This document shows positions 1-62,481 of a stretch of DNA of 64,000 bases, piece by piece (position 1 is the stretch's first letter; each line of letters starts with the position of its first letter). The notes beneath the pieces are model-generated. The model saw only the letters and a program-made list of their open reading frames with translations. It was not told the origin of the DNA and did no database searches. Made by a program: the position numbers and the translations under genes. The DNA lies in the IMG/VR virus record IMGVR_UViG_3300020474_000001, positions 62,001 to 126,000 of that record; one strand, written 5' to 3'.

Positions 1-1803
1 AGATACTCCAATTTCTTCATACAGATTGTTTGATCCGCTGAAAGTCACGTCTTCAGAACTAGTTGAAGAATCTTCAGTTTCCTCACTACTACTTTTAGTA
101 CTACGTCTGTTTTGTCTACGCTTATTCCAATTTGTAGAATTTGTAGAATTATCGCCACCTCCAGAATCGTCACTAAGAAGATCATCATCACGACGATCGA
201 AATAAACCCTAAGAAATTGTTCCCTAAAAATATTCTTTATAATATCACTAGTATATAACTCGGATATCTTTTCTTCACTAAGGAGATTATAATCCCTAAA
301 CATCAATAATAAACCGCTACTTATATTTTCATAATCTCTACCAACAATATTCTCATTATCTTTTTCATCAATAAAAGATTTTGCAGCTACTGTTAATATT
401 GGTCCAAAATATTTCATTGAAGAAACATCATTATATTTTTTAAGATCTTCAGAGTCAATATTAGATTCTTTTGAGAAGGAATATGGTTGAGGATCAATTA
501 TATTTGCACGAACATAATCACTTTTAATATCAGGAGTATCATCAGAAACCTCACCACCTTTGCTTCTAGCTTCAGTTCTAGAATCAAGTTTGACTTTTTT
601 ACCACCAAATATAGAATCGTATATAAATCCACCAAGAGACGCTCCGCCTTGACCGCCAAGATACATTCCTATCGCAGTTCCTACGCCTGGAATAGGAATC
701 AATGACCCCAGCAAACCACCTACCCAAATACCTATACCAGAACCAATTCCACGAAATGCTGCTTTACCTACTGGATCTCCAGCCGCCCAGGATAATACAA
801 ACTCCATAAGACCACCAATAAATGGTAGGTTTCTAACAATAGGTTTGAGTATTCCTGCAGCTGCTTTAATTGATTTTGCTGCGCCTCTTTTACCAAGAAC
901 CTTTACCGCAGCATTTCTACCAAAGTTGGAGATAGAAGATCTAGCATACTTGCCACCCAAACTCTTAACTGTATCAGAACCAAACCTTTGTATGGCAGCA
1001 TTTTTACCAAACCTAGAAGCATATCTTCGTGTGGCATCAACCGACACAGATCCTCGTTTAGCTCTACCAGGTCCTGATACTGACGGTCTATTTGAATTCT
1101 GTTTAGGTGGTCTAGTAGAAGCTGCAAGTAACCCAACTACAATAGCACCATTTAGAAATGTATTTAAAAGAGAAGATACCTTATCAAAATTTTCTACCCC
1201 ATCCTCTCCAAATAAATTTCCAACAATCCCACGAGTAAAATCATATGCTCTGTATCCAAAGTCAACAAGATTTACCAGTCCACTTAATATTCCCTTGCCT
1301 ATAGCATAACCACCAGAGACAAGAAAATTTACTGCAGGAGTAGCAATATTAACAATATTCGTGAGGTATGGTAAGAATTCAAGAAGTTTATAAATTAAAA
1401 ATCCAGAAGTAACATTAGCCAAAAACCCAAATAAAGAATCCCCTATGCCAAGATTTGGAACTTTAATTGGATTCTTTTTAATTATATTTTTAACAGAATT
1501 TTCAAAAGATTTTTCTCTTTTCGATCTAGTTATTCTTTCCTGATTTTGATTATTCTTTTTTTGAGATTCTTTTTCTATCTTTTTTTTCTTAGTATAGTAA
1601 TCTTTTCTTAAAACCAATACAGAAGAAATTTCTTGAGTAGTATTCAGAATTGGTGGAAGTATATTTTCTACAGATGTAAGTGTCCCTCTGATAGTATTTC
1701 CACTTAAAGGACTACTATTGATAATATTATTGCTAAGATTTCTATCTGTAGGTCTTGGTGTATACACACCCGTGCTACTAATGTTGCCTGTAATTCTAGC
1801 CAT
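1..1803 (-). CDS. Tape-measure/baseplate-hub-like structural protein (partial, runs off the left edge)
   Basis: Not in ORF track. ATG at 1803 (MARITGNISST...), no stop in the stretches read by hand down to position 1. Gly/Ala-rich hydrophobic stretches (IPIPGVGTAIGMYLGGQGGASLGG); lies downstream of gp26/gp51. Confidence 0.6.
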   Translation of the reverse strand, partial: MARITGNISSTGVYTPRPTDRNLSNNIINSSPLSGNTIRGTLTSVENILPPILNTTQEISSVLVLRKDYYTKKKKIEKESQKKNNQNQERITRSKREKSFENSVKNIIKKNPIKVPNLGIGDSLFGFLANVTSGFLIYKLLEFLPYLTNIVNIATPAVNFLVSGGYAIGKGILSGLVNLVDFGYRAYDFTRGIVGNLFGEDGVENFDKVSSLLNTFLNGAIVVGLLAASTRPPKQNSNRPSVSGPGRAKRGSVSVDATRRYASRFGKNAAIQRFGSDTVKSLGGKYARSSISNFGRNAAVKVLGKRGAAKSIKAAAGILKPIVRNLPFIGGLMEFVLSWAAGDPVGKAAFRGIGSGIGIWVGGLLGSLIPIPGVGTAIGMYLGGQGGASLGGFIYDSIFGGKKVKLDSRTEARSKGGEVSDDTPDIKSDYVRANIIDPQPYSFSKESNIDSEDLKKYNDVSSMKYFGPILTVAAKSFIDEKDNENIVGRDYENISSGLLLMFRDYNLLSEEKISELYTSDIIKNIFREQFLRVYFDRRDDDLLSDDSGGGDNSTNSTNWNKRRQNRRSTKSSSEETEDSSTSSEDVTFSGSNNLYEEIGVS

Positions 1804-6462: not shown

Positions 6463-8040
6463 ATGGCAAAGAGAAGCGTTGGAGAAAAAATAGATGTCCA
6501 AAGATTTGGATATGAAAGAGCGAGTGGATTGGACTTTGTAAAAAACGATGATCGCACATCAACAATATCATATGGAGATGGTGACAACAAGGAAACGAAA
6601 AAACTAAGTCTTGTTGTAACTCCTGAGATGGAGGTAGAAGAGGTGGATGCAGATGGAAATCCAACAAAGTTAAAACCAACAGGAAAACAAACTACAGTAA
6701 TTTATGACTGTGAAACTTATACTCAAGAAGGAAATAGAACTACAGGTGACCAGATTAAACAGAGGGCAGTAAGTCAAGAAAACATTGATAATGGTAAGTG
6801 TACAAAAATAGCATCTAAAACAACAAATCCAGAAAAAATTGGTGATACTGTAAATCCAGATTATAATGAAGAGACAAACAATAGATGGATTGTAGAAGAG
6901 GGTGTAGATATTCCTGAGCGTTTAAAGGATGAATTAGAAGCAGGAGGAACTACTACTGCATCTAGAAGTGTATCAGACTCCGAAAGGAAAATTAAAGAAG
7001 GAGACCGTAGAGTACGAGCAGAAGAACTAAAGAGTGATGATCCACTGATAAAAGCTACTGCTGAGGCACTGGAGGCACTGAAAGAAAAGGGAGAGTTGGA
7101 TCAAACTAGTGGTGGTCTAACAACAGCAAATACTAATGGTGTAGACGCTCTACTTAACGTAGGAAAAAAGAGAAGAGACAGTTATACAAATAGTGCGGGA
7201 ATATCATATCCAAAAGACTTAAAAAACCAAGACTATATCGAATTTAAAATTTATGAGTATAGTCCTAGAAAATTATCTACAACTAATACAAAGCAGGCTG
7301 GCATTGAAGACAGAACCCCAGCAACAAAAAGAGACGACAAGGGAACAATAAGATTACCAATACCAGGAAATATTCAAGATAGTAATGGAGTAGAGTGGGC
7401 AAAGGGAGATATAAATCCACTTCAAGCAGAAGTAGCAGCTGCTGCCTTAGGGTTTATTAGTGGTGGAGAAAATTCGGACACAGTGACGACGAACTTTAAA
7501 GAAAAAATAATGAACAATAAAATACTAGGAGATGCTAAAACTGTCACTGCAAATTTATTTACTGCAAGAGCGACTAAAACAAAAGGTCTCCTTAGTAGAG
7601 CAACTGGAGCAGTAATCAATCCAAATTCAGAACTGCTATTCAAGGGACCAAAGCTTAGAACATTCAACTTTTCGTATGAACTTTCTGCTAGAGATGAAGA
7701 TGAAGCTAAAATAATAGTAAATATCATTAGAGCATTTAAACAAGCATCCTCAGTACAAAAATCAAAGACGAGAATATTTCTAGGAGCTCCATGCACCTTC
7801 ACAATTAAATATAGGAATCCTGAAAATAAAGAACATAAATTTATTGGAAAAATAAAAGAATGTGCTCTAGTTAATATTGCAGTTAACTATGCACCAGCAC
7901 AATATTCAACATACAATGATGGATGTATGACAAAATACAATCTAACTTTACAATTCCAAGAACTTGAACCAGTACATAATAGTGATTATATGGAATGGGA
8001 TGAGGAAAATAAAGATAACATAAATTCAATAGGATACTAA
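6463..8040 (+). CDS. gp48: Baseplate tail tube cap gp48
   Basis: C-terminal LPIPGNIQD, INPNSELLFKGPKLRTFNF, LQFQELEP. Confidence 0.85.
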   Translation: MAKRSVGEKIDVQRFGYERASGLDFVKNDDRTSTISYGDGDNKETKKLSLVVTPEMEVEEVDADGNPTKLKPTGKQTTVIYDCETYTQEGNRTTGDQIKQRAVSQENIDNGKCTKIASKTTNPEKIGDTVNPDYNEETNNRWIVEEGVDIPERLKDELEAGGTTTASRSVSDSERKIKEGDRRVRAEELKSDDPLIKATAEALEALKEKGELDQTSGGLTTANTNGVDALLNVGKKRRDSYTNSAGISYPKDLKNQDYIEFKIYEYSPRKLSTTNTKQAGIEDRTPATKRDDKGTIRLPIPGNIQDSNGVEWAKGDINPLQAEVAAAALGFISGGENSDTVTTNFKEKIMNNKILGDAKTVTANLFTARATKTKGLLSRATGAVINPNSELLFKGPKLRTFNFSYELSARDEDEAKIIVNIIRAFKQASSVQKSKTRIFLGAPCTFTIKYRNPENKEHKFIGKIKECALVNIAVNYAPAQYSTYNDGCMTKYNLTLQFQELEPVHNSDYMEWDEENKDNINSIGY

Positions 8041-14083: not shown

Positions 14084-14818
14084 TTATTCAAGTGTGATGG
14101 CAGATTGATCAAAGCATTCTGGACAATCTGGTTTAGCTTCCCAACCTAGTGCTTCAGCAACTTCAGGAAACTGACAGATAAAGATACACTTACATCCTTC
14201 TGCAATGTCCATGTGCTCCTTCTGTGTACCGTTTGCAGACCTTAAATTGATGTAATGTATCCAAGACCTTACTGAACCTGTCATATAGATCCTTGTAGGT
14301 GTTGCTAAGGGCAATGCAAACCTAGCACACTCTTTTGCAATTCCCTCATCTATCATCTCACGATACAAGTCCATCCCTTCACGAAAATGTTTCTGAATTA
14401 AAATCTCATATCGTTGTCTTGTAAATGGATCAATATCATCAATACTGTTCTGACGATTCTTTGTATCCTGCCTTCTCAGATCTGGAAGAGGAATATCCTG
14501 TGCTAACAATGAACTATCAGCATAGCGTTGTGAAAATTCTTGATATGTAAATGATCTATGACGTAGAATTTGAGCTGCTAATCCCCTAGTAGTGTTGATC
14601 TCTAGAGTCATACTTGCTTGCTCAAAGATCGACCAGTGTTCATGTTTGATACAGTATCTAAGAAGACCTGCAGAAGTATCAAAGTTTAATTGATTATTTG
14701 GGTTGCTTACACGAGCAACATATGAAATAACTTCTTGTGCTGTTTTTCCAAGAAGTTCACCTGCACCTTTAGTTAGTGCAATAAGCTTTACTTGATCAGT
14801 CTGGATACCCATCATCAT
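14084..14818 (-). CDS. thyX: Flavin-dependent thymidylate synthase
   Basis: RHRSFTYQEFSQRY ThyX motif, ARVS, HWSIFEQ; likely start at the MMM overlapping the upstream gene. Confidence 0.95.
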   Translation of the reverse strand: MMMGIQTDQVKLIALTKGAGELLGKTAQEVISYVARVSNPNNQLNFDTSAGLLRYCIKHEHWSIFEQASMTLEINTTRGLAAQILRHRSFTYQEFSQRYADSSLLAQDIPLPDLRRQDTKNRQNSIDDIDPFTRQRYEILIQKHFREGMDLYREMIDEGIAKECARFALPLATPTRIYMTGSVRSWIHYINLRSANGTQKEHMDIAEGCKCIFICQFPEVAEALGWEAKPDCPECFDQSAITLE

Positions 14819-14981
14819 CTCCTGTATACACTTCATCATAGTCACTAATGTAGTTTGCAATCTCTGCATACTGATCACTTTGTGGTTTATATGCATCAAC
14901 ATCAGAATAAACTTCTGACTTTAATACTTCCACAAGAGACTCTAAGTTTTTTATGATAAGCTTAAGCTTTTCTCTGTTCAT
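14796..14981 (-). CDS. Conserved cyanophage hypothetical protein
   Basis: 61 aa, LKSEVYSD...DDDGYPD. Confidence 0.7.
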   Translation of the reverse strand: MNREKLKLIIKNLESLVEVLKSEVYSDVDAYKPQSDQYAEIANYISDYDEVYTGDDDGYPD

Positions 14982-15004
14982 TTCTTATCAACTCTGGCAT
15001 AGTT

Positions 15005-15041
15005 ATTATAGACAAAAAAAGAGGGTCTGTCAAGACCCTCT
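15005..15041 (-). terminator. Terminator fused with a sigma70 promoter
   Basis: AGAGGGTCT/AGACCCTCT hairpin plus U-tract; TTGACA (15033-15028)-17nt-TATAAT (15010-15005). Confidence 0.85.
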
Positions 15042-15049
15042 GTATGAAT

Positions 15050-15277
15050 TTACCAATCTAGGTGCCACATATCTTTCGGACTTTTGCCCGTAGCTTTTTG
15101 GTAGAACCATTCAAGCGAGTTAACCATTACCCATTTCTGGTAGTTAACTCCGCGATAACAAAGATTCGCGTAAACATATTCTGGTTCTATTGGTCTATTG
15201 ACTTTTGTTGTTGCAAAATCCTTTGGTAATTGGTAATACATTAAGTTAGCTTCTTTGGGTGCATATAGCGATGCCAT
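15050..15277 (-). CDS. Small protein with a DUF4278-like YRGV motif
   Basis: NLCYRGVNY; the start may be the internal Met at 15241. Confidence 0.55.
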   Translation of the reverse strand: MASLYAPKEANLMYYQLPKDFATTKVNRPIEPEYVYANLCYRGVNYQKWVMVNSLEWFYQKATGKSPKDMWHLDW

Positions 15278-15329
15278 AAAAAAGACTCATCACTACAACC
15301 ATTGCAAGACTAATTTCTAATACAAGCAT
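15246..15329 (-). CDS. 27-aa single-TM microprotein
   Basis: MLVLEISLAMVVVMSLFYGIAICTQRS, preceded by a GGAGGA Shine-Dalgarno. Confidence 0.5.
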   Translation of the reverse strand: MLVLEISLAMVVVMSLFYGIAICTQRS

Positions 15330-15441
15330 TACTTCCTCCCTGGCAGTGTCCTGCCATGCAGATTTGTGCTCTCAAAAGTTTTTCCTCTTTAATTTTTTTC
15401 TGCTTAATGATCTCTAAAATATTGATAGAGACTTTTTTCAT
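15310..15441 (-). CDS. 43-aa basic microprotein
   Basis: MKKVSINILEIIKQKKIKEEKLLRAQICMAGHCQGGSNACIRN; ATGA overlap with the upstream gene. Confidence 0.6.
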   Translation of the reverse strand: MKKVSINILEIIKQKKIKEEKLLRAQICMAGHCQGGSNACIRN

Positions 15442-15611
15442 TTTGCTACCTCCACACCACGATACTTAAGAATTCTCTTAGGTTGTGATGCCTCACCAAG
15501 TACTTTATTAGTGTACTCTGTGCTGTCATATCCTACACCACGATATGTGGTGCTGTAACCGGAATTGCGGTTCTGAACATGAACATTGATGAGTTCTTGT
15601 AGTGTATTCAT
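15438..15611 (-). CDS. DUF4278-like small protein (57 aa)
   Basis: MNTLQELINV...TTYRGVGYD...LKYRGVEVAK with two YRGV motifs; CAGGAG SD; directly downstream of the aptamers. Confidence 0.75.
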   Translation of the reverse strand: MNTLQELINVHVQNRNSGYSTTYRGVGYDSTEYTNKVLGEASQPKRILKYRGVEVAK

Positions 15612-15645
15612 TGGTTTACTCCTGAAGTAGTTGGATTTTTAGGTC

Positions 15646-15824
15646 CGTTCCTTCAGTCGTTTGCGTCCCATTTACACTCAGGTGTTGCTTCCTTTACAGT
15701 CTCAATCACCTCAGACTTAATAATTTTACTTACACTACTACTTGCTTCAATACGTTGGATCACATCCTCAGCATCGGTGCAATGTATAGCAGAGTAGAGA
15801 AAAAATTCAAACATGGGATGAACG
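15646..15824 (-). ncRNA. Glutamine riboswitch-like aptamer 2 (glnA/Downstream-peptide class) with an ORF-sized P2 loop
   Basis: 5' CGUUCAUCCCA ... UGGGACGCAAACGACUGAAGGAACG 3'; P1 CGUUC/GAACG, P2 UCCCAU/AUGGGA. Confidence 0.7.
15653..15814 (-). CDS. 53-aa microprotein nested in aptamer 2
   Basis: MFEFFLYSAIHCTDAEDVIQRIEASSSVSKIIKSEVIETVKEATPECKWDAND; intact 162-nt frame. Confidence 0.7.
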   Translation of the reverse strand: MFEFFLYSAIHCTDAEDVIQRIEASSSVSKIIKSEVIETVKEATPECKWDAND

Positions 15825-15827
15825 CCC

Positions 15828-16064
15828 CGTTCCGCGACTTACTTGCGTCTCAAAGCAAATTACACTCACCTTCGACTTTGCTTCTAAGATATCTAATTAG
15901 AAATCTTTTGGAGCCATAGTCCAAATTATCATCTTCGATAATCTCTGCTGCTCTTTCTTGCCACCTTTCACATGGCATATGCCAGTTATAAGGTTTAGTC
16001 AAATGATCAGCGTGAGAAGCGAAAATTGTTAATCCGAGTAAGATAGTTTGCATTGGGATGAACG
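15828..16064 (-). ncRNA. Glutamine riboswitch-like aptamer 1 with an ORF-sized P2 loop
   Basis: 5' CGUUCAUCCC ... GAGACGCAAGUAAGUCGCGGAACG 3'; P1 CGUUC/GAACG; extended P2 UCCCAAUGCAAA/UUUGCUUUGAGA. Confidence 0.65.
15850..16053 (-). CDS. 67-aa microprotein nested in aptamer 1
   Basis: MQTILLGLTIFASHADHLTKPYNWHMPCERW...VEGECNLL; the ORF-track start at 16107 lies upstream of the promoter. Confidence 0.7.
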   Translation of the reverse strand: MQTILLGLTIFASHADHLTKPYNWHMPCERWQERAAEIIEDDNLDYGSKRFLIRYLRSKVEGECNLL

Positions 16065-16071
16065 TATGGTT

Positions 16072-16100
16072 ATTATAACCGTTACTAACTATATAGTCAA
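16072..16100 (-). promoter_or_regulatory. Sigma70 promoter of the riboswitch transcript
   Basis: TTGACT-17nt-TATAAT; predicted start about 1-2 nt before aptamer 1. Confidence 0.8.
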
Positions 16101-16107
16101 ATAGCAA

Positions 16108-16123
16108 TGTAACATACGATACA
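16108..16123. promoter_or_regulatory. NtcA binding site
   Basis: TGTA-ACATACGA-TACA, a perfect GTA-N8-TAC palindrome just upstream of the -35. Confidence 0.7.
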
Positions 16124-16125
16124 AT

Positions 16126-16807
16126 TTAATAATTTCTCCCATATCCACCAGATCTTCCTTTACTAGTGTTTCTTTGAGTCCTATTTGTGTGATTATAGTT
16201 ACCAGAAACTCTCATTCCGGAATTTTCTCCAGCAGGAGAAGGTATGTTTCTAAGACTTCCAGAACTCCCTCTAGTATCTCTAGGTTTAGATCCATATCCA
16301 GTATTCTTCTGAACCTCTACTTCCTTTCTCTGAGGTCTATCATCACTATTACTTGCCTTAGATTTTTTCTGCGCGTCCTTCAATTTTTTAATTTGCACCA
16401 TCGTGCTTACCTGGTCCTGAGGACTGCCACCTCTTTTTCTTCCAAGTGAAGCAATCCTCGACGAGATCTTGTCATTGCCACCACCCTTTCCCCAGAAAGG
16501 TTTTTTCTCCTCTACAATCTTTGGAGATGACCTACGCTTAGACACTGGAAGTATAGGCTTAGTCGGCAATCTAAGTTCAGGTGGTTTAAATCCAGAATAT
16601 TCTTTATCAGATGCTATGATTTTATTTTTAATCGCTTCAAAATCTTTTATCTGCTCTTTACGAGCAATATGATCCATTGGATCTAACTTTCTGTTCTTTA
16701 TCTCATTCATCTTTGCACATGCAACCTTACGGCCAGCAGTCCAATACTGCTGACCTGGGCACGTATATTTACTAGATTCCGAAATAAATTCCTTGAAGGT
16801 TCTCATT
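16126..16807 (-). CDS. Basic putative internal head protein
   Basis: MRTFKEFISE N-terminus, K/R/S/G-rich; ATAAATA late promoter at about 16828-16834. Confidence 0.55.
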
Positions 16808-16833
16808 CGCAAGAACATTACTTCAAGTATTTA

Positions 16834-22335: not shown

Positions 22336-22445
22336 TTGAAAAAGGGTAGGTAATAGTGCAGGGAACACTAATGGTGATATTTCCACGACACCCTCCATCG
22401 TGGATATTAGAGACGTGTTTATACACCCCATAGGTCTCGGTTGAT
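22336..22445 (-). ncRNA. PhotoRC-II-like structured psbA leader
   Basis: GAGAC...GTCTC stem and TCCACGAT/GTCGTGGA stem with a GAGGG loop, in the position of the cyanophage PhotoRC-II motif. Confidence 0.65.
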
Positions 22446-22497
22446 GGTGTATCATCGGATCAAGCAACTTCACATTTCTTAACCCGTTGATGTAACT

Positions 22498-38799: not shown

Positions 38800-38873
38800 T
38801 CGGGATGATAGGATTCGAACCTACGGCCACTCGCTCCCAAAGCGAGTGCTCTACCAAACTGAGCTACATCCCG
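38800..38873 (-). tRNA. tRNA-Pro(TGG)
   Basis: CGGGATG acceptor, TTTGGGA anticodon loop, GGTTCGAATCC. Confidence 0.93.
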
Positions 38874-38896
38874 ATAAAATGAGTATAAATCAAAAA

Positions 38897-39058
38897 TCAA
38901 GATTCGTCAAGACTATCATTCTCTTCTATTTCTTTTAGATCCTCTTCATTTAAAAGATCAATCCACTCCTCATCAGGAGTGAAGAGGATTGGACCCTCCT
39001 CAATCCTCTCCTGAAGTTCTTCTAATAAAGGATCTCTTTTTTCTTTATTGTTTTCCAT
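38897..39058 (-). CDS. 53-aa acidic hypothetical protein
   Basis: MENNKEKRDPLLEELQERIEEGP... Confidence 0.5.
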   Translation of the reverse strand: MENNKEKRDPLLEELQERIEEGPILFTPDEEWIDLLNEEDLKEIEENDSLDES

Positions 39059-39348
39059 CACAAATCAATATCCTTTTTTAATTGAGCAAAAGCATCTTGC
39101 CTACCTTTTATCATTCCCTCAATAAAACCTGCCCTTTTCTCCCAGGTATCTCCAGTATCTGATCCCCTCTTAGGATTAATACACCTATGATCACCCAACT
39201 TATTGCAAACTAATCCTGCAAGATCTTCTTCAGAATTTTCACTTGAAGCACCAGTTGCCCATACATGTTTTCCATTTAACCACACCGCTTCACACTTCTC
39301 ACATTGCTTTCTTTCCAATTTAAAATCAGAAAATTCTTTATCAGACAT
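39058..39348 (-). CDS. Conserved Cys-rich hypothetical protein
   Basis: CEKC..WLNG.H.W, DLAGLVCN..CINP. Confidence 0.7.
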   Translation of the reverse strand: MSDKEFSDFKLERKQCEKCEAVWLNGKHVWATGASSENSEEDLAGLVCNKLGDHRCINPKRGSDTGDTWEKRAGFIEGMIKGRQDAFAQLKKDIDL

Positions 39349-39553
39349 GATTTTTCTCCTGTTGAGATTTAAATTCCTTTCTATCCTTTTCCAGTTCCCT
39401 TTCAATCTTTTTCTTGAACATCCACAGTCTAAAGTTTAAAAAGGCATACCGAGTATTAAGGTCAATAAAAGCAATTAATCTCATAGTAGCATTATATCCT
39501 CCATCAAGCAATAATACAATAACGATTAAGACAAGCAGATAGAATAGTGTCAT
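39341..39553 (-). CDS. Small membrane protein
   Basis: N-terminal TM; CTAAATA late promoter upstream. Confidence 0.6.
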   Translation of the reverse strand: MTLFYLLVLIVIVLLLDGGYNATMRLIAFIDLNTRYAFLNFRLWMFKKKIERELEKDRKEFKSQQEKNHV

Positions 39554-39586
39554 ATAATTTAATTACTTGTAGATATTTAGTTGTAA

Positions 39587-39673
39587 CGGAAGAGAGAGGA
39601 TTCGAACCTCCGGAGGACTTGCACCCTCGCCAGTTTTCAAGACTGGAGCCATAAACCACTCGACCACTCTTCC
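39587..39673 (-). tRNA. tRNA-Ser(TGA)
   Basis: GGAAGAG acceptor, CTTGAAA loop, long variable arm. Confidence 0.93.
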
Positions 39674-39919
39674 TTATCGCTCTTCGAAATCAATACGACG
39701 AACTTTACGTTGTCGTCTTGCCTCCTGATAAGCAAGATCAGAAGCAGAAAGTTGATCACCAACCTTTTGCTTTGTATAGTTTAACATAACAACCTCATTT
39801 AAGTCAACTGCTGATACTTTATCTTCTTTGACTGTCATCATATTTTGACATCCACAAACCTGAGTTTTTGTATTACTTACTATTTCTGTATTACATACTT
39901 TGCATCTTACGATAATCAT
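39674..39919 (-). CDS. Conserved Zn-ribbon hypothetical protein
   Basis: CKVC...CGC, RKVRRIDFEER. Confidence 0.7.
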   Translation of the reverse strand: MIIVRCKVCNTEIVSNTKTQVCGCQNMMTVKEDKVSAVDLNEVVMLNYTKQKVGDQLSASDLAYQEARRQRKVRRIDFEER

Positions 39920-39943
39920 TTTTCATGGTCCTCCTATTAGGAA

Positions 39944-40015
39944 TGCAAGATGAGGGATTCGAACCCCCGACAACCTCGGTGTAAACGAGACACTCTACCA
40001 CTGAGTTAATCTTGC
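39944..40015 (-). tRNA. tRNA-Val(TAC)
   Basis: GCAAGAT acceptor, TTTACAC loop. Confidence 0.92.
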
Positions 40016-40018
40016 AAG

Positions 40019-40090
40019 CTGGCCCGGCTGGGATCGAACCAGCGACAACTTGATTAACAGTCAAGCGTTCTACCGCTGAACTACAGGCCA
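40019..40090 (-). tRNA. tRNA-Asn(GTT)
   Basis: TGGCCTG acceptor, CTGTTAA loop. Confidence 0.92.
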
Positions 40091-40109
40091 TTGTACTCCC
40101 CGAAGGGAA

Positions 40110-40181
40110 AGCGGAATACCGGATTCGAACCGGTGACGTTCAGCTTGGAAGGCTGACATTCTACCGCTGAATTAATTCCGC
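40110..40181 (-). tRNA. tRNA-Gly(TCC)
   Basis: GCGGAAT acceptor, CTTCCAA loop. Confidence 0.92.
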
Positions 40182-40222
40182 AGCGATATGGTAATTATAA
40201 AGTATTACCAAACCTTTGTCAA

Positions 40223-40693
40223 CTATTCAAAAATAAACTCTCTCCATTCTGATACTTTTGTTCTTTCCAATTCCAACATGACTTTGCTGAGTGGTGCTTT
40301 TGGTTTTGAGCGAAGTTTCATGTTTGTCTCGTGCAAATATTTATTACCCTTTGCAACATTACATTTATCACAACAGGCAACCAAATTATCCCAGGTGTCC
40401 CCACCACCTTTACTTCGTGGAATTACATGATCGATTGTTAAATTTCTTGTTGATCCACAATACTGACAAGAGTATCCATCTCTTTTATAAATCATATTCC
40501 TTGTCGGTGTAGTTTCAGAAAATCGTAAAAACGGTATTCTGACAAAATTGACAAGTCTAATCACCCTCTTCGATATGAGTTTTGCTTTTTCCTTAAACAA
40601 AAGAACTACAGCTCTTTTCCAATTTGTGAATTGAAGCGGTTCATAAGAACTATTCAGAACTAAAATCGTAGAGTGCGGTTCTACCATTTCCAT
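40223..40693 (-). CDS. HNH endonuclease (McrA/HNH_5-like)
   Basis: RDGYSCQYCG..LTIDHVIPRSKGG..WDNLVACCDKCNVAK. Confidence 0.92.
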   Translation of the reverse strand: MEMVEPHSTILVLNSSYEPLQFTNWKRAVVLLFKEKAKLISKRVIRLVNFVRIPFLRFSETTPTRNMIYKRDGYSCQYCGSTRNLTIDHVIPRSKGGGDTWDNLVACCDKCNVAKGNKYLHETNMKLRSKPKAPLSKVMLELERTKVSEWREFIFE

Positions 40694-40730
40694 AAGAATT
40701 CTTTCATCCTCAAATGTATTTATTGGGGAA

Positions 40731-40804
40731 CGACTCAGGTAGGATTCGAACCTACGACCGACTGCTTAGAAGGCAGTTGCTCTATCCAGCTGAGCTACTG
40801 AGTC
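40731..40804 (-). tRNA. tRNA-Arg(TCT)
   Basis: GACTCAG acceptor, CTTCTAA loop. Confidence 0.93.
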
Positions 40805-40812
40805 AAAAAAGG

Positions 40813-40886
40813 CGGGATAGATGGGGCTCGAACCCACGACCCCCAGCGTGACAGGCTGGTGCTCTAACCAACTGAGCTACTACCCC
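40813..40886 (-). tRNA. tRNA-Asp(GTC)
   Basis: GGGGTAG acceptor, CTGTCAC loop. Confidence 0.92.
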
Positions 40887-52072: not shown

Positions 52073-52145
52073 TGGAGAATAGGAGACTCGAACTCCTGAC
52101 AGCCTGCTTGCAAAGCAGGTGCTCTACCAACTGAGCTAATTCCCC
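52073..52145 (-). tRNA. tRNA-Ala(TGC)
   Basis: GGGGAAT acceptor with G3-U70, TTTGCAA loop; own promoter TTGACA-17-TATAAT at 52156-52184. Confidence 0.93.
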
Positions 52146-61644: not shown

Positions 61645-62481
61645 TTATATCCTGTTGAAGAATGCGTCTAGCGTTCCATCACCTTTATTATATTTCTTCT
61701 CAATCACCCGCGTTAATCCCAATCGTTGTGTTGCAAAATCAATGTAATCTTTATCTATATCATATCCAATATAATCCCACCCAATATTGACTGCTGCAAC
61801 AGCAGTAGATCCTGTTCCCATAAACGGATCAAGAACTATACCAGATTGTTTTCCAGTTAATTTCAAGCAATCTTCAACTAATTTGACGGGAAATACTGCT
61901 GGATGCTTTTTATCTTCTCTCTTCATCCAAAGAGTTTCATATGGAATAAACCAACAATTACCTTTATCCCTAAGATTTGGTTTTGTATCATTCAAAGACT
62001 TACTGTGTCTCAGGTTTTCCTTGTAGTATTCATAAGGGACACCCACAGATAGACGATCTACATCTATACTACCATCTTTAGTAAAGTGGAAAAGATGTTC
62101 CCATGTTGGAGATAAAAATCTTTTACTGTTAATTGGTTTTGCATGACCACTAGTCTTACCATTTACATGAATAGACTTGACCCAATTAATATGATTTTGC
62201 AATATCCAATCCTGCCTAAGAGCAAGACCCACTTCCATGCCAATCCATGGATCAACATTAGAGTATCCCATATTGACAAATAAATGCCCATCATCTTTAA
62301 GAACTCGTTTTCCTTCTCGGAAGATTTCTACCAACCAGTCAAGATACTCCTGACGTGGTTTATTGTCATCATACTTACCGTATTTAATTTTAAGATTATA
62401 CGGAGGAGACGTAACGATAGCATCAATACTACTATCCTCCAGTTTTTTCATACCCTCTAAACAATCAAGCAAATAAAGCAT
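61645..62481 (-). CDS. Beta-class amino-DNA methyltransferase (probably N4-C)
   Basis: VTSPPY motif IV precedes DPFMGTGST motif I; HPAVFP. Confidence 0.9.
   Translation of the reverse strand: MLYLLDCLEGMKKLEDSSIDAIVTSPPYNLKIKYGKYDDNKPRQEYLDWLVEIFREGKRVLKDDGHLFVNMGYSNVDPWIGMEVGLALRQDWILQNHINWVKSIHVNGKTSGHAKPINSKRFLSPTWEHLFHFTKDGSIDVDRLSVGVPYEYYKENLRHSKSLNDTKPNLRDKGNCWFIPYETLWMKREDKKHPAVFPVKLVEDCLKLTGKQSGIVLDPFMGTGSTAVAAVNIGWDYIGYDIDKDYIDFATQRLGLTRVIEKKYNKGDGTLDAFFNRI

Follow-up and report, generated by a model that had tools for sequence, protein, structure and literature searches.

Does a short stretch of a marine cyanophage genome, in which an NtcA-type box, a promoter, pieces of a glutamine riboswitch and several very small genes follow each other, form one nitrogen-sensing unit, and how are the sensor and the genes arranged in it? 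The locus lies on the minus strand of a 64,000-nt stretch (positions 62,001 to 126,000 of IMG/VR record IMGVR_UViG_3300020474_000001), referred to as the window. The initial annotation had described a TGTA-N8-TACA palindrome 7 nt upstream of a TTGACT-17-TATAAT promoter, with the predicted transcription start right at the first of the glutamine aptamers, followed by six micro-ORFs, two of them with YRGV motifs, and a terminator. This observation was confirmed, as every listed feature is present on the minus strand, although two of the six ORFs do not follow the aptamers but lie inside them. Its interpretation, a phage module that reads the host nitrogen status at both the DNA and the RNA level and may modulate glutamine synthetase (GS) or lysis timing, was only partly supported.

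The box, TGTATCGTATGTTACA, is located at 16123-16108. Seven nucleotides downstream follow TTGACT (16100-16095), a 17-nt spacer and TATAAT (16077-16072), an 11/12 match to a sigma70-type promoter, and after another 7 nt CGUUC, the first strand of the aptamer, starts at 16064. On its own the palindrome is not significant in the window, with 2 matches against 1.0 expected and at least 2 matches in 26 of 100 shuffles. However, two comparisons show that it is not a chance occurrence. Of 44 promoter-like sites in the window only this one has such a box upstream, and GTA-N8-TAC occurs at fixed offsets in 77 of 113 related upstream regions, where about 0.023 per region is expected, and in 168 of 241 in a larger set. 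The promoter is conserved as well, with the pattern TTGnnn-16..18-TAnnnT matched in 98 of the 113 relatives.

In agreement with this promoter, contigs from four metatranscriptomes cover only 15064-16074. They end at 16068 and 16074, and the depth is zero across 14700-15004 and 16103-16500, which places the start site at about 16065-16074. However, the RNA contigs are assemblies from mixed communities, and those reaching the 5' end come from close relatives (6-26 differences). At the other end the unit is closed by an intrinsic terminator (15041-15010), a G+C-rich 9-bp stem at 15041-15020 plus a T run to 15010; the RNA coverage stops at 15064, 23 nt short of the hairpin.

The geometry of the box is non-canonical. 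It is centred near -50.5, with 30-31 nt to the -10 and next to a full consensus -35, while an NtcA-activated (class II) promoter has the box at -41.5, about 22 nt from the -10, and no -35, so this criterion is not fulfilled. Nor is it a clear repressor geometry of the gifA/gifB type, in which the operator overlaps the -35, the -10 or the start site: in the window the box ends 7 nt upstream of the -35, while in 38 related cassettes it overlaps the -10 or the start site and in 17 it lies at -55..-50, abutting or within 1-4 nt of the -35. Hence, the sign of control cannot be read from the sequence. The position, the 73 of 241 cassettes (about 30%) without an exact box, and the lack of significance in the window alone would also fit a box that binds another CRP-family or phage factor, or an inherited relic without regulatory effect in this phage. 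We consider this possible but less likely, since GTA and TAC are kept while the N8 varies (consensus TGTAtCA..TACA) and the offsets are fixed. Moreover, the box persists where the sigma70 promoter is replaced by a T4-late TATAAATA; there it sits on the start site, the same layout as in the host MED4 IF17-like gene (PMC6212724). GTA-N8-TAC is the marine NtcA consensus used for cyanophage genomes, and NtcA promoters were predicted with such a site in intergenic regions of T4-like cyanomyoviruses (Sullivan et al. 2010, PMC3037559). Here, by contrast, the site is tied to one mobile cassette, lies next to a full sigma70 promoter or on a late-promoter start site, and is paired with a predicted glutamine sensor.

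No contiguous aptamer exists in the window, and Rfam returned no glutamine family, neither at the gathering score nor at E<=10; the RF01739 gathering score of 35 bits is thus not reached. This is explained by inserts of about 190 and 330 nt, and the assignment rests on homology to ORF-less relatives. One of these, L094, scores 46.4 bits with the glnA-type (glutamine-I) model RF01739, in an arrangement in which the outer strands pair. By this alignment the leader is one glutamine-I three-way junction broken up by inserts. Outer P1 is formed by CGUUC (16064-16060) and GAACG, the latter part of the strand at 15654-15645 (GAAG of the E-loop, GAACG and a G), which matches GAAGGAACG of RF01739 exactly. 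The outer P2 helix (UCCCAAUGCAAA / UUUGCUUUGAGA, 16058-15848) closes a 187-nt loop and is followed by the junction strand CGCAAGUA (15847-15840), which the preceding A at 15848 completes to ACGCAAGUA and which was aligned to ACGGAAGUA of the RF01739 consensus in L094. The P1 strands and the ACGnAAGUA (15848-15840) and GAAG (within 15654-15646) junction strands of this class are thus present.

P3 is formed by AGUCG (15839-15835) and CGACU (15659-15655). It covaries across 190-430 nt, with 279 of 281 loci fully paired and four compensatory pair types: AGUCG:CGACU was found in 124 loci, AGUCA:UGACU in 66, GGUCG:CGACU in 47, AAUCG:CGAUU in 26, GGUCG:CGAUU in 8, AUUCG:CGAAU in 3 and AGUCU:AGACU in 3, and only 2 of 281 have a mismatch. 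Scans for variants at P3 positions 3 and 4 found none, which leaves these two pairs uninformative. At the far end of P3 lies a second, circularly permuted junction, GGAACGG-loop-CGUUCA-hairpin-GACGCAAA. Its P1' hairpin, GGAACGG-GG-CGUUC (15833-15820), pairs GAACG (15832-15828) with CGUUC (15824-15820) and is predicted by RNAalifold and RNAfold; the inner CGUUCA follows within 2-4 nt in 221 of 221 loci. The inner P2' helix (UCCCAU / AUGGGA, 15818-15666) is followed by the junction strand CGCAAA (15665-15660), and GACGCAxA precedes the P3 3' strand in nearly all of the 221 loci. The inner junction keeps the ligand-pocket nucleotides, which lie in the CGUUC/GAACG helix plus the CGC strand (PMC6698751), but lacks the E-loop strands and may not bind ligand. 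A two-piece glutamine RNA still binds glutamine (PMC6698751).

The hairpins around the two inserts are also supported by covariation, in 40 ORF-bearing relatives for the outer P2 and in 97 sequences for P2', and 0 of 1000 shuffles reach the observed pairing. In the window, pair probabilities are 0.72-0.99 for 8 of the 12 outer P2 positions and 0.73-0.95 for P2'. Thermodynamic folding predicts the long-range hairpins in 81% and 72% of relatives, against 36% and 20% when the interior is shuffled. However, the outer P2 of the window has a C.A mismatch at stem position 3, the only one among the 40 sequences, and the modelled double junction is 10 kcal/mol above the unconstrained MFE, a difference that ligand and tertiary energy would have to make up. 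RNAalifold on 41 natural ORF-less versions returned exactly P1, H1, P3, the inner hairpin and H2, with 9 compensatory pairs, and compact homologues appear in the RNA contigs as joints that skip 139-147 nt.

The reading of the initial annotation, and also the one we followed first (with the second aptamer of glutamine-II type), was two ordinary aptamers side by side, in which the first CGUUC pairs with the first GGAACGG and the second with the second, each with a long hairpin insert. Each half-set alone resembles an aptamer, tandem glnA RNAs were reported (Weinberg 2010, PMC2864571), and the forced side-by-side fold costs about the same as the nested one (-112.4 against -113.1 kcal/mol). Compact first halves in relatives score 25-29 bits with RF01739 and RF01704, but this is below the gathering scores (35 and 33 bits), while the outer arrangement reaches 46.4 bits. 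The 5' strand of P3 is joined to the first GGAACGG by a single nucleotide, which places that GGAACGG strand at the far end of P3 and not at the outer junction, and only the outer pairing brings AAGUA and GAAG together. Together with the P3 covariation and the RNAalifold prediction, this led us to drop the tandem model, which we now regard as unlikely. The criteria for the glutamine-II class, a pseudoknot with GGAACG in the loop of P2 and at least 33 bits, are not fulfilled either, with no RF01704 hit in the window; the helix first read as its P2 overlaps P3 and the E-loop strand and fits better as an anti-Shine-Dalgarno helix. As the P1 strands never vary, which CGUUC pairs with which GAACG follows from the P3 geometry and the Rfam match, not from covariation. 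A strand-exchange switch, in which the duplicated strands let the RNA toggle between nested and swapped pairings during transcription or on ligand binding, is therefore not separable by sequence. The inner strands are identical to the outer ones and invariant in 221 of 221 loci, more than a simple capping hairpin would need, the two forced folds have nearly equal energy, and the glutamine-II RNA exchanges strands in the crystal (PMC6698751). As the geometric argument against the swapped form while P3 is closed still applies, we consider this reading doubtful.

The two P2-type loops each hold a small ORF. ORF-A (67 aa, 16053-15850, phrog_6471) starts with an ATG at 16053, as the alternative 85-aa version from a TTG begins upstream of the transcript; its start and stop codons lie in the strands of the outer P2. 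ORF-B (53 aa, 15814-15653, phrog_504, T4-GC 430) has its start codon in a helix strand and its stop codon in the P3/E-loop strand; its last codons, WDAND-stop, are the aptamer core. The two are paralogues, their profiles aligning at 93.9% probability. It could be argued that they are structured spacer RNA that happens to be open, as the ORF ends are dictated by the RNA core, ORF-less versions exist, and no function or solved relative was found: Pfam returned nothing, PHROGs gave unknown function, and the Atlas gave only hypothetical viral proteins. This is improbable, since differences per site at codon positions 1, 2 and 3 are 0.41, 0.23 and 0.52 for ORF-B and 0.24, 0.18 and 0.44 for ORF-A, about 89 of the 95 ORF-B loci scored keep start and stop in fixed register, the PHROG matches are at about 1e-21, and amino acid identity is 36-59% across phage genera. 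Their translation is nevertheless inferred from the coding signal alone.

Downstream of the aptamer, CUUCAG (within 15627-15619), which overlaps the Shine-Dalgarno sequence AGGAG (15623-15619), can pair with CUGAAG (15656-15651), the last 2 nt of P3 plus the E-loop strand. All 6 positions are paired in 172 of 185 loci, with G:C exchanged for A:U, and CUAAAG always goes with CUUUAG (64 of 64). Another pairing in the MFE fold of the window, between GUUCAU and the AUGAAC start of the following gene, is less general, as only 114 of 185 genes start with ATGAA(C/T).

This following gene (57 aa, 15611-15438, phrog_5049) has two YRGV motifs and is a DUF4278 (IF17-like) ORF by homology: 35 of 36 homologues match PF14105 at E<=0.01 (best 1.7e-7), and YRG is present in all 97 distinct products, while the copy of the window scores 20.4 bits (E 6.8e-4) against a cut-off of 25.3. 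A search of the PDB with the DUF4278 profile gave no match. The next ORF (43 aa, 15441-15310), whose start overlaps the previous stop (ATGA), has tblastn hits in 5 related loci and no family match. A hydrophobic 27-aa ORF (15329-15246) has no tblastn hit, but small hydrophobic ORFs are found at the same place in S-BM1 and S-TIM54. The last ORF (75 aa, 15277-15050, phrog_6192), which may start at the internal ATG at 15241, has one YRGV motif and only a weak profile match to the DUF4278 set (68.7%), sharing only the motif.

The proposal that the DUF4278 peptides inhibit host GS or set lysis timing rests on analogy: DUF4278 forms part of IF17, the GS inactivating factor, and the same riboswitch-NtcA context exists in the hosts. 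However, the short IF17-like proteins of Prochlorococcus lack the C-terminal sequences crucial for the IF17-GS interaction in Synechocystis (Klaehn et al. 2018, PMC6212724). Nothing links the cassette to lysis; the antiholin look-alike of ORF-A scores 0.58, in a range often due to chance. On present evidence this proposal is doubtful.

Taken together, we interpret the locus, with a rough probability of 0.7, as a mobile nitrogen-status cassette of marine cyanophages, in which a host-type sigma70 promoter flanked by a conserved, putative NtcA box starts transcription 1-2 nt before a large double-junction riboswitch of the glutamine-I class. In this view, CU-GAAG pairs with CUUCAG without glutamine and masks the Shine-Dalgarno sequence of the DUF4278 gene, while with glutamine the junction would form and free it, making an ON switch as in the gifB leader. 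The AUGs of ORF-A and ORF-B would be buried once the hairpins close, and ribosomes reading these ORFs would have to unfold the sensor; their translation and sensing should therefore be mutually exclusive. The ORF-B stop lies 41 nt before the DUF4278 AUG, which would allow coupling. The analysis itself establishes the helices by covariation, the coding signal, the cassette boundaries and the RNA coverage, while glutamine binding, the ON logic, NtcA binding and its sign, and the function of every protein are inferences.

The Synechocystis gifB leader, a glutamine-I riboswitch, shares the core CGUUCA-P2-ACG(C)AAGUA-P3-GAAGGAACG, the three-way junction with E-loop strands, the position in the 5' leader of a DUF4278 gene and the inhibitory pairing with the ribosome-binding site, which suggests an ON switch; gifB and the MED4 IF17-like gene combine NtcA control at the promoter with a glutamine ON-riboswitch (PMC6212724). 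The cyanophage RNA differs in that its P2 loop holds a 67-aa gene and its P3 loop a second, permuted junction with another gene, that it measures about 420 nt instead of about 60, and that the Rfam model does not detect it. The marine picocyanobacterial hosts carry only the type II aptamer (PMC6212724). This glutamine-II riboswitch (Downstream-peptide motif, RF01704), upstream of IF17-like genes in Prochlorococcus and marine Synechococcus, shares the pocket nucleotides, the DUF4278 family with YRG motifs, the ecological setting and an NtcA site at the promoter (MED4), but its GAACG strand lies in a P2 loop (a pseudoknot), while here it follows P3 directly. Tandem aptamers, such as the glycine riboswitch and the tandem glnA RNAs, also have two ligand-pocket sets in one leader; here the two units are not side by side but share P3, one is circularly permuted inside the other, and both carry ORFs. 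In group I introns of T4-like phages a protein gene likewise sits in the loop of a helix, so that the RNA must fold around it, but the present RNA is not an intron or a ribozyme, its ORFs are not homing endonucleases, and their start and stop codons are part of helices or of the conserved aptamer core. A scan of genome contigs for the 3' core found 5 contigs, all in MAG bins or draft assemblies; the four with enough sequence carry the phage-type core, only two of them readable across the whole cassette, and no host copy of this exact core was found. We found no description of an ORF-bearing, shared-P3 double aptamer in the literature searched, which did not extend to Ames & Breaker 2011 and Ren et al. 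2015, so that an earlier account for tandem glnA RNAs is not excluded.

A more far-reaching and tentative reading is that of a ribosome-gated double glutamine sensor, in which glutamine would decide whether ribosomes make the nested peptides (low glutamine, open RNA) or the IF17-like peptide (high glutamine, closed RNA), and the duplicated P1 strands would allow exchange between a canonical and a circularly permuted junction that share a helix. If so, riboswitches would be widespread in cyanophages. A census of riboswitches found only two glutamine aptamers in cyanophage genomes and concluded that phages rarely use them (PMC5473149). The cassette is present in at least 100 sequenced cyanophage records, with ORF-B annotated as a hypothetical protein in nearly all the listed records, and in several hundred viral contigs; it is missed because genes sit inside the aptamer, and covariance models need insert-tolerant searches. 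For RNA biology, it offers a natural case of protein genes nested in riboswitch helices and of two junctions, one of them circularly permuted, sharing one helix. For phage ecology, it indicates, with NtcA and glutamine binding inferred from sequence, that cyanophages read the host nitrogen status, 2-oxoglutarate through NtcA and glutamine through RNA, to time a set of small proteins, one of which belongs, by homology, to the family that includes the inactivating factor of glutamine synthetase.

All elements of the unit read on the minus strand. The palindrome TGTATCGTATGTTACA lies at 16123-16108 and is followed, seven nucleotides downstream, by TTGACT, a 17-nt spacer and TATAAT (16100-16072), an 11/12 match to the sigma70 consensus. 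Seven nucleotides further on is CGUUC (16064), after which ORFs of 67, 53, 57, 43, 27 and 75 aa follow, and a 9-bp G+C-rich hairpin with a T run lies at 15041-15010. The window belongs to an uncultured marine T4-like cyanophage, with best megablast hits of about 78% identity (phages Bellamy and S-CAM3), and the stretch is present in marine DNA metagenomes. It carries thyX, a PhotoRC-II RNA (66 bits; 22369-22462, minus strand) and eight tRNA genes (38800-40886 and 52073-52145, minus strand), several of them preceded by consensus sigma70-type promoters. Upstream of the cassette, a 230-aa ORF rich in Lys, Arg, Ser and Gly (16126-16818, minus strand) has no Pfam or PHROG match and no counterpart in any related locus; the upstream neighbour varies between phages, being nrdB in Syn19, S-BM1 and P-RSM1.

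Taken alone, the palindrome is not more than chance, as the window holds two perfect TGTA-N8-TACA matches, the other at 7924-7939, against 1.0 expected. Overall there are 16 GTA-N8-TAC sites in the window against 9.1 expected. The comparative evidence is different. Of 44 promoter-like sites in the window, only this one has GTA-N8-TAC upstream. Among 113 non-redundant homologous upstream regions, 77 carry GTA-N8-TAC, where 0.023 per region is expected, and the offsets from CGUUCA cluster at -57..-61 (54 regions), -52..-54 (16) and -15..-23 (7). GTA and TAC are kept while the N8 varies, with the consensus TGTAtCA..TACA. The sigma70 promoter is conserved as well, with TTGACT in 63, TATAAT in 72, a 17-nt spacer, and the -10 lying 7-9 nt before CGUUCA. 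In a wider set of related cassettes the box was found in 168 of 241. In 23 of these 241 the sigma70 promoter is replaced by a T4-late-type TATAAATA, for example in the Syn19 locus (L123, 600-650) and in the related loci L012, L055, L059 and L105; in 17 of the 23 the box lies on the late start site, and in several it is a perfect 5-bp palindrome such as GTAGC-N4-GCTAC.

To examine transcription of the unit, contigs from four metatranscriptomes were mapped to the region. They covered 15064-16074 only, with zero depth on both flanks (14700-15004 and 16103-16500). As these are assemblies from mixed communities, they count as support and not as mapping of the start site. Contigs with 0-1 differences covered 15064-15694 and 15767-15939, while contigs of close relatives ended at 16068 and 16074, at the predicted start.

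A search with Rfam finds no glutamine riboswitch family in the window. The sequence nevertheless shows two 5' halves (CGUUCAUCCC) and two 3' halves (GACGCAA...GGAACGG), separated by the 67-aa ORF (ORF-A) and the 53-aa ORF (ORF-B), an arrangement that is explained by related phages. S-BM1 has a compact first element and the 53-aa ORF inside the second, while S-TIM54 has both ORFs inside. A pattern scan of viral contigs returned more than 120 such loci; in nearly all of them the second hairpin holds an insert of 150-210 nt, and in about a third the first hairpin holds an insert of 200-250 nt. The helices closing these inserts covary, with examples such as UCCCA/UGGGA, UCCUA/UAGGA, UCUUAUG/CAUAAGA and UCUCAUG/CAUGAGA, and none of 1000 shuffles reaches the observed pairing. 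Folding predicts these helices much more often than when the interior is shuffled, and RNA contigs of other organisms join the two halves with loops of 3-10 nt. In the window itself, the outer P2 helix (16058-16047 / 15859-15848) is the only one of 40 with a C.A mismatch at stem position 3, where a UGA stop meets UCCCA; an unusually long extension of the helix (12 positions, 10 paired) may compensate.

The topology of these elements is nested and not side by side. A natural version without either ORF, the related locus L094, scores 46.4 bits with RF01739, and the match runs from the first CGUUCA to the last GAAGGAACGG, with a P3 stem around the middle part. The P3 strands are AGUCG, directly after ACGCAAGUA, and CGACU, directly before GAAGGAACGG. 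Scans that forced a change at each P3 position gave 281 loci, of which all but 2 are fully paired; positions 2 and 5 each show G:C, A:U and U:A, while position 1 shows A:U and G.U. RNAalifold on 41 ORF-less versions returns P1, H1, P3, an inner hairpin GAACG:CGUUC, and H2. Only one nucleotide links the P3 5' strand to the first GGAACGG, and that strand must therefore sit at the far end of P3. The inner elements thus form a second, circularly permuted junction (GGAACGG, loop, CGUUCA, hairpin, GACGCAAA) that shares P3 with the outer one. The inner junction keeps the nucleotides that form the glutamine pocket in the solved glutamine-II RNA (C1, G2, the C17-G18-C19 strand and A37-G41; PMC6698751), but lacks the AAGUA and GAAG strands. 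Its CGUUCA follows the first GGAACGG within 2-4 nt in 221 of 221 loci. Contigs filed under Synechococcus, Verrucomicrobiales and Euryarchaeota MAGs and a Nonlabens draft assembly (loci L127, L128, L129 and L131) also hold the phage-type aptamer core, and L127 and L131 show the whole phage cassette; they may be phage contigs in MAG bins or assemblies, and two are about 190 kb long.

A candidate expression platform involves the 3' edge of the aptamer. CU(G/A)AAG, the last two nucleotides of P3 plus the E-loop strand, is complementary to the six nucleotides that end in the AG of the Shine-Dalgarno sequence AGGAG. The pairing is complete in 172 of 185 loci, and CUAAAG always goes with CUUUAG (64 of 64). 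This helix excludes the outer junction. The unconstrained fold of the window contains it, whereas forcing outer P1 and P3 gives the full double junction at 10 kcal/mol higher energy. The arrangement matches the ON-switch model proposed for gifB, where glutamine binding melts an inhibitory duplex (PMC6212724, PMC6698751). Many relatives (L001 at 1700-1760, L007, L022, L038 and other related loci) carry an extra conserved insert of about 45 nt (AAACGGAUCC...GAGAAGGUUAA) between the P1 3' strand and the anti-SD strand, which may be a further structured module of the expression platform; the window lacks it.

The nested ORFs are genes. Their variation by codon position follows 3>1>2, and their start and stop codons are fixed in register with the RNA. 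For ORF-B, the AUG is 4 nt after CGUUCA in 91 of the 95 loci scored, and the stop is the U(G/A)A of CU(G/A)AAG in 89 of 95. The stop of ORF-A is the UAA, UGA or UAG inside the 3' strand of its own helix, and the 5' strand compensates. ORF-A and ORF-B match phrog_6471 and phrog_504, respectively, at about 1e-21, and their profiles align at 93.9% probability with a shared Cys...EC frame. ORF-B (T4-GC 430) occurs in at least 100 phage records, including Syn19, S-SSM5, S-SSM7, P-RSM1 and S-SKS1, and is annotated 'hypothetical protein' in all but two of the listed records; even the compact first elements of those phages stay below the Rfam gathering scores. The last residues of ORF-B, WDAND, are encoded by the aptamer core, which is also present in the ORF-less versions. 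Searches of Pfam, PHROGs and the Atlas assigned no function to either ORF. ORF-A (15850-16053, minus strand) has a hydrophobic N-terminus resembling a signal peptide and two conserved Cys, and its nearest named look-alike in the Atlas, an RI-type antiholin, reaches a score of only 0.58, below the 0.9 lead threshold and in a range flagged as often chance.

Of the genes downstream of the switch, the first ORF carries YRG in all 97 distinct variants, and 35 of 36 match DUF4278, while the window's own copy is below the Pfam cut-off. The 75-aa ORF shares only the motif, and the 43-aa and 27-aa ORFs are weakly supported or unsupported. A 61-aa ORF (phrog_878) and thyX follow the cassette in most relatives (85 and 82 of the fetched loci). 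A perfect TTGACA-17-TATAAT promoter (12/12; 15005-15041, minus strand) leads into these two genes and overlaps the terminator, its -35 hexamer sitting in the terminator hairpin (loop and adjacent stem bases).

The initial annotation had described the locus as a nitrogen-sensing module with an NtcA box, a sigma70 promoter, glutamine aptamers and a DUF4278 micro-operon. What it observed is confirmed by our analysis. Its interpretation is supported in part. glnA RNAs in marine samples and a few phages (PMC2864571, PMC5473149, PMC9964418), NtcA sites in cyanomyoviruses (PMC3037559) and the trio of NtcA, glutamine riboswitch and DUF4278 in the hosts (PMC6212724) were already known. Protein genes nested in the hairpins of a riboswitch aptamer, a permuted second junction sharing P3, and the prevalence of this cassette in cyanophages were not found in the literature searched, although this did not include two key papers and the shared-P3 layout of 'tandem' glnA RNAs may have been noticed before. 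The cassette is of high interest to riboswitch and phage biologists.

Taken together, the analysis establishes that the promoter and box are conserved, that the transcript boundaries are plausible, that the helices exist and that the ORFs are coding, whereas the mechanism is inferred. By homology, glutamine binding to the outer junction would free the ribosome-binding site of the IF17-like gene. From the anatomy of the RNA, the nested AUGs would be buried once the hairpins close, and ribosomes reading ORF-A or ORF-B would have to unfold the sensor; ORF-B terminates inside the P3/E-loop strand, 41 nt before the DUF4278 AUG. In this view, translation and sensing should compete, and termination-reinitiation coupling is possible. 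Binding of NtcA to the box is likewise inferred; we consider it plausible and somewhat more likely than not, without the sequence indicating activation or repression. The class of box located on the start site mirrors the repressed host genes, while the class in this window, centred near -50.5 beside a consensus -35, fits neither textbook geometry. Repression would agree with an ON riboswitch, since both would then favour expression when nitrogen is plentiful.
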